Assembly (NCBI RefSeq): GCF_001194135.2
Contig: NC_068991.1
Span: 2,765,738-2,829,737, forward strand
From: Octopus bimaculoides
Taxonomy: Eukaryota
DNA length: 64,000 bases
Direction of reading: 5' to 3'
The translations under genes were made by a program, and so were the position numbers. Each line of letters begins with the position of its first letter. Position 1 is the stretch's first letter. Positions 16,933 to 61,065 of the stretch are shown here, piece after piece. The notes under the pieces were generated by a model that made no database searches, had not been told where the DNA came from, and worked only from the letters and a program-made list of their open reading frames with translations.

Positions 16933-17950
16933 ATATATACGACTCTGCTTTCGTGCGTGTATATGTGTGTGTGTATATATGTGAGTGTGGGTATGTGTAT
17001 GAGTGTTACGTTGTACAACAGATGTTCTTAAGTGCTTCATACGTTATTCTTTCCGGTTCTTCTCGTTGTTTGATAGGTCAGCCTATTGACCAATCAAATT
17101 ATTTCAATGCAAATTCCTGCTTATCTACCCATCTACCAGATTATTTATATAGTTATCTACCTTTCCACGTATTCAACAGACATCTGTTAACATATCTTTC
17201 AAAAGGTACTCTATGTACACATACGCATGCACTCATACAAACATACATACATACATACATACATACATACATGCGTGTGTCAGTGAACAGGTCGCGGTCT
17301 CAAAGCGACGAAAATATTTTGACAAATTAAATTTAAATGTTGAAGTGAATCTAACGGATTTTGTGTGTTATTTTAAATGGCTTATAAACACCTTCCACGC
17401 TGCAATTGTATATATATACATATATATNNNNNNNNNNNNNNNNNNNNNNNNNNNNNNNNNNNNNNNNNNNNNNNNNNNNNNNNNNNNNNNNNNNNNNNNN
17501 NNNNNNNNNNNNNNNNNNNNNNNNNNNNNNNNNNNNNNNNNNNNNNNNNNNNNNNNNNNNNNNNNNNNNNNNNNNNNNNNNNNNNNNNNNTATATATATA
17601 TTTACACATGCACACATACAGACAGACAGAAGCGTATATGCATACATGCACTAATATGTGTCTGGGTGTGTATGTATGTTTATCCCTCGTGTAAACAGGA
17701 AACTGACTCCACAGCAACAACAACAGCACCAGTAACAACAATAACAGCCACCGGGAAAAAACAAATTGGGCAACATCAACAAAAACAAAATGTGAATGAC
17801 GCATTTGACTGTGAGAAGTGGCGACTGGATTTGCCAAAGTGGACATGAATAAATTGCATCGGGCCATCCAGATCGTATCACGGAAGAATATTCTGTAGAT
17901 CACTAGGTGGGAATAGCATAGGCTAATTATTATTATTATTATTATTATTA

Positions 17951-18420
17951 TATGTTTGACTTTTGCTTTGTATTTGTACAAGTTGACTCCAAGTCTCACC
18001 CAGAGACCTCAAGAGACAAGTTAGAAGTTCCTGTTGGTGTTATGACTAGGATAACATATATTTGGTTTTACACAAAGTATTGTTCTAGAGAATGTTTAAG
18101 AAAACATTAAAATAAATTTACAAGTTTGTTTTAAAATTTGAGATTACTTAGACAGTATTTTACGTAGGATATGGGCAGTTCCCATGAGCACTATCTTTAG
18201 AACTTCAGCCATTTTGGGGTTTCCTGGTGTCCGAGCCAGGTAGTAATCAGGCCCTTTTGTTATCATTCCAAGGGCACCTATGACAATAGGTATTGTTTTA
18301 GTCTTCAGGTTCCACATTTTGCCAATTTCTATTTCAAGATCTTTATACTTGCCTAGTTTTTGGTAGGTCTTGACAGATACATTTATATCGATTGGGACAG
18401 CCATAGCGATGAGAAGGCAT
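17951..18420 (-). mobile_element. 5'-truncated RLE (R4/Dong-like) non-LTR retrotransposon, copy 1
   Basis: ORF 18144-18404 (MAVPIDINVSVKTYQKLGKYKDLEIEI...IPIVIGALG...VLMGTAHILRKIL) is a typical R4-clade RLE C-terminus. A ~190 nt 3' UTR ends in (TAA)n, and (TAA)n also lies upstream. Confidence 0.88.
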
Positions 18421-18534
18421 ATTATTATTGTTATTATTATTATTATTGTTATTATTATTGCTGTTGTTGTTGTTGTTGTTGATGTTGATGTTGTTGCTAT
18501 TATTATTATCGTTATTATTATTATTATTATTCAG

Positions 18535-19057
18535 TAGTTTTATTTTTATAACATACTTTCACTTCACTACCGAGCGCAGCTCTGTGCGCCTNNNNNNNNN
18601 NNNNNNNNNNNNNNNNNNNNNNNNNNNNNNNNNNNNNNNNNNNNNNNNNNNNNNNNNNNNNNNNNNNNNNNNNNNNNNNNNNNNNNNNNNNNNNNNNNNN
18701 NNNNNNNNNNNNNNNNNNNNNNNNNNNNNNNNNNNNNNNNNNNNNNNNNNNNNNNNNNNNNNNNNNNNNNNNNNNNNNNNNNNNNNNNNNNNNNNTTATC
18801 TCTATTTCCAGGTCTTTGTATTTTGAAAGTTTTTCCATTTCTTTTAGAGAAACGTTGTCATCTGCTGGTATTGATACATCAATTAGAAAGCATTTTTTTT
18901 CTTCATGATCTTTGACAACTATATCTGGTCTATTTGCCTTAATTTCTCTATCTGTGTGTATTGGCATATCCCAGAGTATGGTTGCTTTCTCGTTTTCTGT
19001 GACCTTTTCTGGCGTGTGTTTATACCATCTTTTTTCTGTTGTATACCATCTTTTTTC

Positions 19058-19061
<4 letters not shown>
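18535..19061 (-). mobile_element. 5'-truncated RLE (R4/Dong-like) retrotransposon, copy 2 (different subfamily, spans a gap)
   Basis: WYKHTPEKVTENEKATILWDMPIHTDREIKANRPDIVVKDHEEKKCFLIDVSIPADDNVSLKEMEKLSKYKDLEIEI contains the PD...D..P.D...K.EK..KY nuclease motif. The 3' UTR differs from copy 1; both ends abut (TAA)n. Confidence 0.9.
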
Positions 19062-19114
<53 letters not shown>

Positions 19115-49122: not shown

Positions 49123-50038
49123 TATACATATATATACATATATATATAATATTATATCATATCATATATATGTTAAATATATATATGTATATATATATAT
49201 ACACACACATATATATACATATACATGTATATATATACTATATTATATTTTGTGTTTGTGTGTTTGTGTTTTAACTTAGTCAGGAGAGAAACTTCTGTCC
49301 TCGTGACCTTTTCAAAAGGCCCGTGAGATAAGGGAAAAAGCGCGGGTTAATGGTAAACCGCGCCCCATAATCTGCTTTAGTAAGAGCATTGGACCAAGAT
49401 ATTTAATGTTTTCTGAAATCGGGAAAGATTATTTTCAATCCATTGATTTTCCTTATCCATGCAAGTGTTTGAATTTCTTCTGGATAAAACCTTAGTCCAC
49501 CGGAAATAACATTTGCCAGAAAATATTAGTAAAACAACTGGATGCAAGGGCCAAGAATGGGACATCTCGCTCAATCAGCTAGAAATAGCAGTCAAGTTAC
49601 CTGGACTCACACATCGTTGTCTTTAGAAGGCAGACATTAAAAACTTAAGTCCTGGATATGCAGTCCTGTCAGGACTGATATGGAGTTATTCAACAACAGG
49701 AAGAACTACACAATTAGGTAGATTGGGGGATGTAAATTCGGGTCTTTTGTTCAGCAGGATATGAAGTAATGGTCGAAGAATTGATGACAAATAACTTCGC
49801 TCTACAACTGAAGTTAGTTCTCACTCTCTCCCCTCTCTCTCTTCCTCTCTCACTCTCTTCCTCTATCTCTCTCTCTTCCTCTCTGTCTCTTTCTTCTCTC
49901 TCTCTCTCTCTTCCTCTCTCGTTCTCTTTCTATATCGTTATCTCTACCTCTTAACCTTTCCCCCACCCTTTGTCTCCTTTTCTATCTGTCTGTCTGATGT
50001 CTATGTATGTATGTATGTATGTATGTATGTATGTATGT

Positions 50039-50336
50039 GCAGATTTGTATGTTTTATGGACGTATTCTCATGCATATAGTTGCATATCTAGGCATACTCA
50101 TATATACTTAAATGATAAACTTCTGGAAAGTCTTACAGATTTTTACAGTTCCAGTGATGCATTGGATCTGTAGTCTTCGAATTATCGTTCTCCTTTCTGG
50201 TTTTGAGAAGCCTAATTTCTCAAGATTGGTATTTAGGCAGTGTGTTACATAACCCAAAGCCCCTATAATTACAGGTATAAACCTAAACTTGTTATCTGGA
50301 TAGAGTAACTGTAGATTTCTCAATAGTTCAGCGTAT
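50039..50336 (-). mobile_element. 5'-truncated RLE retrotransposon (R4-like) embedded in (TATG)n
   Basis: ORF end YAELLRNLQLLYPDNKFRFIPVIIGALGYV...LQIQCITGTVKICKTFQKFII* with a ~70 nt 3' UTR. (TATG)n lies at 50002-50038 and degenerate (TATG)n from 50335. Confidence 0.82.
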
Positions 50337-50680
50337 GTATTCATGTATGTATATATTCATGTATGTATATATTTATGTATGTATGTATTTATGTACGTAT
50401 GTTTGCATGCATGTATGTCTGTTTGTATGTATGTATGTATTAATGTATGTATTTATGCATGTATTCATGCATGCATGTATTTATTTATGCATGCAGGTAT
50501 ATATGCATTTATGGATGTATGTATTTATTTATGTATATATATATGTGTGTATGTATATCCAAGCATATTTACAAAGCTTTTAATAACTATAGTACATGCA
50601 TCTTTTTCAATGTGTTCAATACAAACACAATTTTCATAAATGTTTGTCTGCGCATGCGTATTTGTGCGCAGAGGCTTGTG

Positions 50681-50728
<48 letters not shown>

Positions 50729-52702
50729 NNNNNNNNNNNNNNNNNNNNNNNNNNNNNNNNNNNNNNNNNNNNNNNNNNNNNNNNNNNNNNNNNNNNNNNN
50801 NNNNNNNNNNNNNNNNNNNNNNNNNNNNNNNNNNNNNNNNNNNNNNNNNNNNNNNNNNNNNNNNNNNNNNNNNNNNNNNNNNNNNNNNNNNNNNNNNNNN
50901 NNNNNNNNNNNNNNNNNNNNNNNNNNNNNNNNNNNNNNNNNNNNNNNNNNNNNNNNNNNNNNNNNNNNNNNNNNNNNNNNNNNNNNNNNNNNNNNNNNNN
51001 NNNNNNNNNNNNNNNNNNNNNNNNNNNNNNNNNNNNNNNNNNNNNNNNNNNNNNNNNNNNNNNNNNNNNNNNNNNNNNNNNNNNNNNNNNNNNNNNNNNN
51101 NNNNNNNNNNNNNNNNNNNNNNNNNNNNNNNNNNNNNNNNNNNNNNNNNNNNTATATACACATATACATTCATACATACATATATACATACATATATACA
51201 TACATATAAGAAATAATTAAGATTCACTTGAATTAGGTACTTTAATTGAGGCGCCAAGTCAGTCCGGTATTATCCGCACAGCTCGAAGTTAGGTGAATAA
51301 AAAGCAAATAAGTAACAAGGATGTCAAGGTATTAATGCATTACGGCCGTTTCAGGCAGCTCCATTTAATCGAACAATGCAAGCATTACATCAATTTGAAA
51401 TACATCGCCATCTTGGGATACAAAAATATAGGTTTTCAACAGACAGCATACTCCATTATAATTTTTAGCAAATATTTCATCAGAACTAGAGAATGAAAAA
51501 ATTATAGCAGAATAAACTAAAGTTGCTAAAAATTATATTGGAGTATCCTGTCTATTGAAAACTTATATGTTGTCCTTATTTTCATTGTTTTGGATTTCTT
51601 TCGTTTTTCTTATCTCCCGAGGGAATTCGTTGTAAAGCTTTTTACATTTACTTCGTTTCTCTTAAAGTTATTTATGGTAAACCCTCGTATTTTTTCCTCG
51701 TCTGATTTGAAATTTTTCAGTTAACATCTTAACCAAAGTAAATAGATGGTTCATCCATGTAGTTTGATATTAACATGGGGCCCCCTCAACCGCGGAGGCC
51801 CCCTGCGACCGCAAGGCTTGCAGGAGCTTAGCGATGGCCCTGGAATCAGGCTCTATTTGTAGATTATATCCATTACTTATGAACATATCTCAGATTCTGA
51901 TATAACTCTTTGAACCTTTATTAATTTTATTTATTGACTTTTTCCTTTATGTAAGCGATTGACTCACTTCTGTGTGGATTTTCATCTATCCATATTTGTT
52001 ATATAACAAAGGATTAACACGATTAGTCTCTACTCATATCAGTTCATTTACACTTTTATGTATAAGTGATAATATATATGATAAGCCGGATATATTTTCT
52101 TTGCTCTTATTGCATATAAAAATATGTGAACCGGCCGTTATTAACTTGTCCTTATATGTATGATTTTACGTATATGATCTGTTATCCAAATCATAACGGA
52201 CGATTTGTAATAGAATTGTATTCATGTCGCATTGGCTTTTAACGATATCGTTCGAGTGCTAACACGCTATCTCAAACATAAAGCACCAGGATAAAATATC
52301 TTGCGATATTTATTCCAGCTTGACTTCCCTTCTTCATGAGTCGATAAAATTAAGTATCACTCATATGCTGGGGCTGATGTCATTGATTTACCTCACCTCT
52401 TCCAAATTTCTATCTTTTTGCCAAAATTAGAAATCATATAGAATCGCGATTATAATTATTAACGATATCACATACTCATACCTTTATACATACATATATT
52501 CTACCACATCCTCCATTTCACTTGTTTTCACGTCACACTCGAACCCGCTACCATCTCTTCACTTCCACGCTTTTCTTGCACAAAACGATCACACCTACAC
52601 ACCAACTACCCACATCTTCCACTATCCAACACCGCATCTCTGCCACACTTGCGCACTTTTTCACACATACGCACTCTCCAAAAGACACAAACACTCACCT
52701 CA

Positions 52703-60296: not shown

Positions 60297-60717
60297 CTGT
60301 CTTCGTTAAGTCTTCGGGAAACATCCATCGAAGGCCACTTTTTGGTATGCCGAGCGTTTCACATCCAGGTTTTCTTTGAGGCGTGTTAGTCTGGCTGTTT
60401 TGGAGTTGAGAGAGAGAGAGAGAGAGCTTCCTGAAGAGCTCATTGTCGACACATAGGATATAGTTTTCTTCACTTTTCACCACCACTGTCTGAGAGAGAG
60501 AGAGACTATGGTGTGTCTCCATTGGTCTCAAGCCTCTATTTCCTTTATCTCCTTTTAGGTAGAGCCTATGATTGTCTCTGTCATATCAGTGTTTTGCGGT
60601 TTCTAATGTCTTTGGATTGGATTTCTTCTACAGACGAACCAAGAATCCCAAATGTCGGACCCAGTTACTGCAAATGTTTTGTGAGATATGTATGTATGTA
60701 TATATGTATGTATATAT

Positions 60718-60803
60718 GTGCAGATTTGTGTGTTTTATGTATGCATTCTCATGCATATAGTTGCATATCTAGACATGCTGATATATATTTAAATGATAAA
60801 CTT
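60718..60803 (-). mobile_element. Extreme 3' fragment of the (TATG)n-embedded RLE retrotransposon
   Basis: gtgcagatttgt...tctcatgcatatagttgcatatctag...ttaaatgataaactt matches 50039-50122; flanked on both sides by (TATG)n. Confidence 0.85.
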
Positions 60804-61065
60804 TGTATGCAAGTATGTATGTATGTATGTATGTATGTATGTATGTATGTATACGGGCATCCACCGTGTTACGGCAACCTCAGGTTACTGGATTTCGAGC
60901 TTACGGAAATTCTTACGTATGACCGTTGATTTCGGGTTTGTTATTTCTACACTTACAGAATTTAAAAACTACAGTTTCTTCTTAACCCCAAGTCCGCTTC
61001 TCGGCTTTTTTGCTTAGTTCGAAATATGATTAACAATTTTAAAGACAATAACCATCACACGTCCA

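Follow-up and report, generated by a model that had tools for sequence, protein, structure and literature searches.

A probable R4/Dong-clade retrotransposon remnant set in (ACAT)n microsatellites of Octopus bimaculoides, and relatives in other tetranucleotide repeats

We analysed a stretch of 64,000 nucleotides from Octopus bimaculoides (RefSeq assembly GCF_001194135.2, contig NC_068991.1, positions 2,765,738 to 2,829,737), hereafter the window, in which the remains of a retrotransposon without long terminal repeats (non-LTR) lie between two tetranucleotide microsatellites. On the minus strand, positions 50039-50332 hold the tail of an open reading frame (ORF), its stop codon and the 69-nt 3' untranslated region (UTR) of a long interspersed nuclear element (LINE) protein; this is copy 1 (Table 1). 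Its open frame ends ..NTYAELLRNLQLLYPDNKFRFIPVIIGALGYVTHCLNTNLEKLGFSKPERRTIIRRLQIQCITGTVKICKTFQKFII at the stop, and the downstream array begins immediately past the final base of the element, giving the 3' junction ..AAATCTGC^ACATACAT (the caret marks a junction throughout). The 5' truncation boundary falls within 50332-50341, where a microhomology of ATAC blurs it in the alignment with a copy from Octopus vulgaris. A sequence-only reading made earlier had described here the C-terminus of an R4-like restriction-like endonuclease (RLE) and a short 3' UTR with (TATG)n on both sides. The repeats, the tail, the stop and the UTR are indeed all present, and the 5' junction that it gave, atacatac^gctgaa, reads as quoted, its exact position lying in the interval just stated. 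The 74-aa fragment had no Pfam match. When a full-length relative was compared with the window by tblastn, copy 1 was matched at E = 1e-20, meaning that it is not a chance match. Because only the segment past the catalytic lysine of the endonuclease is retained, copy 1 is a non-functional remnant. We conclude that copy 1 (50039-50341, minus strand) is very probably a dead, 5'-truncated member of the R4/Dong clade of RLE-bearing non-LTR retrotransposons, belonging to a lineage that inserts into (ACAT)n in a sequence- and orientation-specific manner.

Searching the window with itself revealed a second copy, also flanked by the repeat on both sides and with the same 3' end as copy 1 (..AAATCTGC^ACATA). 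A weak match at 13365-13420 is low-complexity similarity only. Counting perfect (ACAT)n/(ATGT)n arrays from 12 bp upwards, the window has 29, which make up 1.25% of its non-N bases and for the most part have no element adjoining. The repeat is thus common, yet chance falls far short of explaining two copies that abut it exactly at four ends, all in one orientation.

Among database proteins the nearest to the copy 1 fragment, at 92% identity, is a "hypothetical" ORF on Octopus vulgaris chromosome OX597824.1 (L001). This copy sits at a locus different from those of the window copies, and the family is therefore dispersed. In L001 the final 8 nt of the 3' UTR (AAATCTGC) are missing, and its internal ACATAC merges directly into the array (L001 10425-10455). 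Its 3' UTR also has a 13-nt internal deletion.

A protein search with the copy 1 fragment alone returned 4 short matches. The fragment was extended upstream by means of short metagenome and Logan contigs (L002-L004), and with the resulting alignment as query 369 relatives were found. The CCHC knuckle and PD-(D/E)xK endonuclease of R2-type LINEs have the hallmark motifs CRLC..H..C, RHD, (K/R)PD, E-x-S-C-P and K..EK..Y. The sequences L002-L004 carry CRLC-x7-H-x4-C, RHD, (K/R)PD, VVEISCP (that is, E-x-S-C-P) and K..EK..Y. An AlphaFold model of the C-terminal 262 aa of the relatives' protein reached a predicted local distance difference test (pLDDT) value of 94, and this RLE model matched the linker/RLE module of R2Tg, R2Pm and R2Bm with E = 5e-11 to 1e-5 and TMq 0.64-0.73, the best R2 match being at E = 5e-11 and TMq 0.72. 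The next-best fold matches were cap-snatching and restriction PD-(D/E)xK nucleases. Compared with PDB sequences, the C-terminal alignment profile gave only marginal R2 matches (E = 0.03), and it was the comparison of folds that decided the matter. On its motifs and its modelled fold, the C-terminal domain of the relatives thus answers to the description of a CCHC motif followed by an R2-like PD-(D/E)xK RLE.

The sequence-only reading had proposed assembling a full-length ORF with reverse transcriptase (RT), CCHC and RLE; such an ORF was found in relatives from other assemblies, as one frame of about 1,150 aa. The element in L005 (ENA ERZ25878469) is about 3.95 kb long, with a 5' UTR of 228 nt and one ORF of about 1,163 aa containing one frameshift. 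In Pfam this ORF matches RVT_1 and, weakly, zf-RVT only, and its best PDB sequence matches are R2 proteins. L011, from a related family, has an intact ORF of 1,152 aa for which Pfam reports RVT_1 only. Both elements therefore have, by Pfam, a single ORF with neither an apurinic/apyrimidinic endonuclease (APE) domain nor N-terminal zinc fingers. An Rfam scan of L005 found no ribozyme like that of hepatitis delta virus (HDV) at the 5' end and no other family; the sub-threshold mir-297 and mir-1277 matches at L005 4216-4474 and 8466-8534 are artefacts of the (ACAT)n and (TA)n arrays.

We then placed the lineage among known elements, using as reference set the alignment of RLE-type LINEs published with PMC5678591 and a neighbour-joining tree on 559 columns. 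The RT placement was run on L005, whose link to the window copy is the shared C-terminal domain (49-71% identity). In blastp, L005 matched DongAa at 6e-105, Dong_Bm at 1e-102 and R4 at 9e-58, with all NeSL, Utopia, R2 and HERO references at 1e-34 or worse. In the tree its RT grouped with Dong at 100% bootstrap, and with Dong plus R4 also at 100%. By its RT sequence the element lineage is thus a member of the R4/Dong clade, on the Dong side, and the label "R4-like" given to the RLE from sequence alone holds up, the RLE fold being R2-like. In a tree of the C-terminal domain the window copy and L001 form a group with 100% bootstrap, joined by L002 and L004 at 98%. Other memberships were rejected: HERO and NeSL/Utopia branch in the tree as clades of their own, and their blastp values are 1e-17 to 1e-34, those for Dong being 1e-102 or better; the RT falls outside the R2 group, and ribosomal DNA (rDNA) occurs at none of the flanks; for Waldo, of the R1 clade, the full-length relatives lack Exo_endo_phos and the endonuclease is C-terminal and of the RLE type. 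Nor is this Dong in the strict sense, the flanks being (ACAT)n rather than (TAA)n.

The insertion flanks were compared across at least five families from several assemblies (Table 1). Of the 3' ends, 9 could be defined and every one abuts (ACAT)n; of the 7 5' junctions, 6 do. The 15 (ACAT)n flanks are without exception in the sense orientation. In L005, L007 and L008 the sole (ACAT) arrays of at least 3 units within 13-15 kb are those that touch the element. We found no element copy ahead of the upstream array of copy 1 (50333..50556) and no 3' end of another copy ahead of the upstream arrays of L005 and L007, which argues against these arrays being tails of tandem copies. The flanks support the (TACA)n specificity suggested from the octopus sequence alone.

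Table 1. Coordinates of the features in the window and in related sequences, with the repeats found at each insertion
Feature	Position	Strand	5' side	3' side	Details
Copy 1, upstream target flank	50333..50556	none			degenerate (GTAT)56 on the plus strand, (ACAT)n-like on the element sense strand (Tandem Repeats Finder)
Copy 1, last 74-77 ORF codons	50111..50341	minus			region past the RLE catalytic lysine (..IPVIIGALGYV..GTVKICKTF..)
Copy 1, stop codon of the ORF	50108..50110	minus			TAA
Copy 1, 3' UTR	50039..50107	minus			69 nt, ends ...CATAAAACATACAAATCTGC, no poly(A)
Copy 1, downstream target flank	50002..50038	none			perfect (TATG)9.2 on the plus strand, (ACAT)9 on the sense strand (Tandem Repeats Finder)
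Copy 2	60720..60803	minus			last 5 codons, stop and 3' UTR; 84 bp, 90% identical to copy 1 (window self-search)
Copy 2, upstream flank	60804..60852	none			ttgtatgca then perfect (GTAT)10 on the plus strand, (ACAT)n in sense
Copy 2, downstream flank	60686..60719	none			imperfect (TATG)n on the plus strand, (ACAT)n in sense
Canonical Dong-type RLE fragments	~17953-18420, 18796-19060	minus			..IDVSIPADDNVSLKEMEKLSKYKDL.. and ..IPIVIGALGMITK..GTAHILRKILSK at the stop (C-terminus GTAHILRKIL)
Insertion, window copy 1			~56 degenerate (ACAT)n-like units	9 perfect units	
Insertion, window copy 2			(ACAT)n	imperfect (ACAT)n	
Insertion, L001 (O. vulgaris)			(CCAT)n then CATACATACATAC	(CATA)n	
Insertion, L003			off contig	(ACAT)n up to contig end	
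Insertion, L004			no repeat	3.5 (ACAT) units	
Insertion, L005			~57 (ACAT) units	26 units	
Insertion, L007			~48 (ACAT) units	3 units	
Insertion, L008			19 (ACAT) units	3 units + TATATAT	99.4% identical to L005, 5'-truncated elsewhere
Insertion, L010			off contig	degenerate (ACAT)n-like up to contig end	
3' UTR hairpin, L003	~812-846				
3' UTR hairpin, L005	~8359-8394				
3' UTR hairpin, L007	~7981-8016				
3' UTR hairpin, L010	~525-560				
3' UTR hairpin, L011	~7300-7335				
3' UTR hairpin, L012	~1798-1832				

Several points weigh against the reading of copy 1 as a clade member with a repeat target. What copy 1 preserves of the protein lies entirely downstream of the catalytic residues, and RT and CCHC are absent; the search recovered no full-length octopus copy; and the clade placement rests on relatives that are just 49-71% identical over 77 aa. 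The target sample is limited to about a dozen insertions. Among them, the 5' junction of L004 is free of the repeat, with just 3.5 units downstream, and the downstream repeat of L007, L008 and L011 is just 3-6 units, which a short element-borne tail would also fit. L006 (from Argonauta) and L009 have no clear array, and the flanks of L002 are uninformative. The conserved N-terminal block of the protein, to which we return below, has no Pfam match, no meaningful Foldseek match and no hhalign match to the zinc-finger/Myb region of R2Bm.

Many LINEs of the CR1, L2 and I types have simple-repeat tails, and (ACAT)n could likewise be a 3' tail that the element carries along or produces itself, the insertion sites being essentially unspecific. 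The conservation of the 3'-end repeat across divergent families would agree with such a tail, as would the bare 5' junction of L004 and the short downstream repeats of L004, L007, L008 and L011, which give way to unique DNA at once. A tail alone, however, cannot place the repeat on the 5' side, and there six of the seven junctions adjoin long arrays of it, oriented as on the 3' side; these have 19-57 units in L005, L007 and L008 and are not the tails of upstream copies. Moreover, the two-sided pattern is found with (ACTT)n in sister families and with (TAA)n, whose status as a target is accepted, in canonical Dong copies (both described below). We therefore consider a tail an improbable account of the flanks. 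In a microsatellite-rich genome with about one perfect array per 2 kb of the window, most of them free of any element, a LINE fragment might also simply happen to lie between two common (TATG)n arrays. With arrays covering so little of the window, exact abutment in a given orientation would be expected at about 3 in 10,000 positions, and yet both copies abut at both ends. The arrangement also recurs in other genomes, in which 13-15 kb contain no array besides those at the flanks, and without a single flank in antisense; coincidence is effectively refuted, and we give it next to no credence.

The repeats could, finally, have arisen secondarily, by expansion of ACAT-like sequence inside the element or at its ends. 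The octopus 3' UTR does have ACATAC near its end, and at L004 225-262 an internal (ATGT)n array has expanded within the ORF, next to the ..EKENIY^.. codons, the position at which the 5' truncation of window copy 1 falls. That internal array, however, is opposite in orientation to the target repeat; the DNA beyond the 5' arrays of L005, L007 and L008 is unrelated to the element; truncation points vary among copies and the flank is always the same repeat; and families without ACAT-like terminal sequence (L005, L007) have the same flanks. Such expansion is thus highly improbable, and insertion into pre-existing (ACAT)n remains the reading that we prefer.

The arrays on the two sides are not alike in length. 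Upstream they are long (19-57 units), and downstream they often stop after 3-6 units and give way to unique DNA, the exception being L005 with 26. This asymmetry could come from insertion near the 3' edge of an array, from a short read-through tail or from later one-sided expansion. As for the suggestion that the element helps to spread (TATG)n arrays, we found little to sustain it, given the many window arrays that stand alone; L004 is the sole case that hints at array seeding.

Relatives of the lineage occupy other repeats. L011 is flanked by (ACTT)n, with about 40 units upstream and ACTTACTTACTGACTTACTTATT downstream (L011 2610-2760 and 7360-7385), and eight Tara metagenome contigs from another family (L012-L019) all end ...ATATTA(A/G)A^(ACTT)n. 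In the C-terminal tree L011 joins L003 and L007, both from (ACAT)n, with 100% bootstrap, and the other (ACAT)n families fall outside this group; the second (ACTT)n family is placed less closely. On this tree, the position of L011 relative to L003 and L007 implies that the target changed by one base in each repeat unit. The window itself also holds fragments of canonical Dong type, which are flanked by (TAA)n at 17926-17952, at about 18421-18530 and at 19061-19112, and which are about 28-37% identical to the tetranucleotide lineage. The presence of two Dong-clade lineages in one genome, each in its own microsatellite, provides a strong internal control for target specificity. Taken together, the (ACTT)n sister families and the canonical (TAA)n copies indicate that the target has been switched repeatedly within the clade.

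The window contains 21 runs of N (7,445 bases), many of which adjoin microsatellites, for example 50729-51152 after (TC)n; another, at 18592-18795, lies inside one of the Dong copies. Breaks in the assembly fall at simple repeats, and copies and arrays are therefore probably under-represented. In Argonauta hians (L006, about 5000-5150 and 8460-8530) two occurrences of a short repeat, made up of a (CAT)n head and then CCATTTAACGTCCGCTTTCCA.., lie close to a Dong-like copy; the repeat is probably a short interspersed nuclear element (SINE)-like element, and the Dong-like copy has no (ACAT)n on its 3' side. An exact-pattern scan of Joint Genome Institute metagenome contigs with the octopus 3' end gave 5 chance matches unrelated to the element.

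Our inference on how such an element might reach its target takes R2 as model, the RT and RLE modules of the two being structurally matched. Insertion would proceed by target-primed reverse transcription, as in R2. The protein of the element would bind the repeat, the conserved N-terminal domain being the likely binding module; this block reads SYRRNRDY..HF.WTYEL.RDVY.CY..DPRIGYMKRLK..WDE.HP, and its AlphaFold model has three helices at pLDDT of about 75 in a model that is poor as a whole (58). The N-terminal domain of R4/Dong elements has been called Myb/SANT-like in the literature. The RLE would then nick the repeat on its bottom strand, which leaves a downstream flank beginning ^ACAT. Such a 3' junction is seen in window copies 1 and 2, L005, L007 and L008, with ^ACTT in the (ACTT)n families, and it is ^ATAC or ambiguous in L003, L004 and L010; the shared junctions point to a putative nick in a common T^AC context.

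The freed (ATGT)n 3' end would serve as primer for complementary DNA (cDNA), whose synthesis would start at the RNA 3' end, probably aided by pairing with ACAU-containing sequence at or near it. The end of L001 at the internal ACATAC is what would be expected if an (ATGT)n primer paired with ACAU in the RNA. Early stops of reverse transcription would give 5'-truncated copies such as the 294-bp and 84-bp copies of the window, and the 5' end would be joined to the repeat through short microhomology, of which we observed TATAT in L008 and ATAC in window copy 1. In six families (L003, L005, L007, L010, L011 and L012) a conserved hairpin lies in the 3' UTR about 40-65 nt before the 3' end. It comprises 9 pairs, 8 of them with compensatory changes, and 100% of the alignment cells are paired in register, compared with at most 56% when the pattern is slid. 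The hairpin is likely to be an element recognised by the RT. The short octopus 3' UTR does not have the six-family hairpin, and that of copy 1 has no significant RNA structure (z = 0.13).

A wider proposal, which we put forward tentatively and think rather unlikely as it stands, is that a Dong sub-lineage widespread in marine invertebrates (octopus, and Tara and other metagenome-labelled ENA assemblies) targets tetranucleotide microsatellites with a specificity set largely by pairing of the nicked repeat with a read-through or repeat-like RNA 3' end. If this were so, one off-target insertion would be enough to let a family change its target, from ACAT to ACTT or, at a greater distance, from TAA, and site choice in an RLE retrotransposon would be naturally RNA-programmable.

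The lineages described here provide natural variants that are closely matched and yet differ in target by a single base in each repeat unit. They should be useful for asking which part of an R2-like machinery reads the target: the N-terminal domain, the endonuclease or the pairing of RNA with DNA. The question is timely, given current work to redirect R2-type proteins for gene insertion. The findings also bear on octopus genomics: the elements break up a class of repeat that is very common, and they may account for flanks shared between tetranucleotide markers.

That Dong/R4-clade LINEs can be microsatellite-specific was already known; the lineage described here has tetranucleotide targets and evident target switching. 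The sequence-only reading knew of no (TACA)n-specific family and thought the element possibly undescribed. As far as the literature goes this stands, ACAY being given there only for the APE-type Waldo and TAA for Dong: our full-text search found no (ACAT)n- or (ACTT)n-specific RLE element, with Repbase and Dfam outside its scope, so that prior cataloguing is possible. Among microsatellite targets, reviews list TAA for Dong, ACAY for Waldo (APE type, R1 clade), AC for Mino, TC for Kibi and TTC for Koshi (PMC3812793). Microsatellite specificity is also described for some HERO families and for Togen, whose target is (TG)n.

Compared with these systems, the octopus lineage is most like Dong, known from B. 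mori, mosquitoes, Biomphalaria, ostracods and cnidarians. Dong has the closest RT (32-33% identity over about 600 aa), a single ORF with C-terminal CCHC and RLE, no APE, N-terminal zinc fingers or poly(A), and it too inserts into a microsatellite in one orientation. The reported target of Dong is (TAA)n, however, whereas that of the octopus lineage is (ACAT)n and that of its sister families (ACTT)n. R4, from Ascaris and other nematodes, belongs to the same clade by RT phylogeny and has the same domain order, but it inserts at a unique site in 28S rDNA and is more distant than Dong (E = 9e-58). Togen, which is NeSL-related, and the HERO families resemble the lineage as microsatellite-specific elements of the RLE type, yet they belong to other clades with far weaker RT similarity, and the repeat of Togen differs. 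R2, with its structures 8GH6, 9DOU and 9NL2/3, inserts into 28S rDNA and is of another clade, and neither its N-terminal zinc-finger/Myb region nor an HDV-like ribozyme was detected in the octopus lineage; its RT and its linker/CCHC/RLE module are structurally alike, and for this reason it is the best mechanistic model for target-primed reverse transcription here. Finally, the (ACAY)n target of Waldo (WaldoAg1/2, WaldoFs1) includes ACAT when Y is T, but Waldo is an APE-type element of the R1 clade, whereas the octopus lineage has an RLE and no APE. Waldo and the octopus lineage are thus a case of convergence on the same repeat by the two major types of endonuclease.

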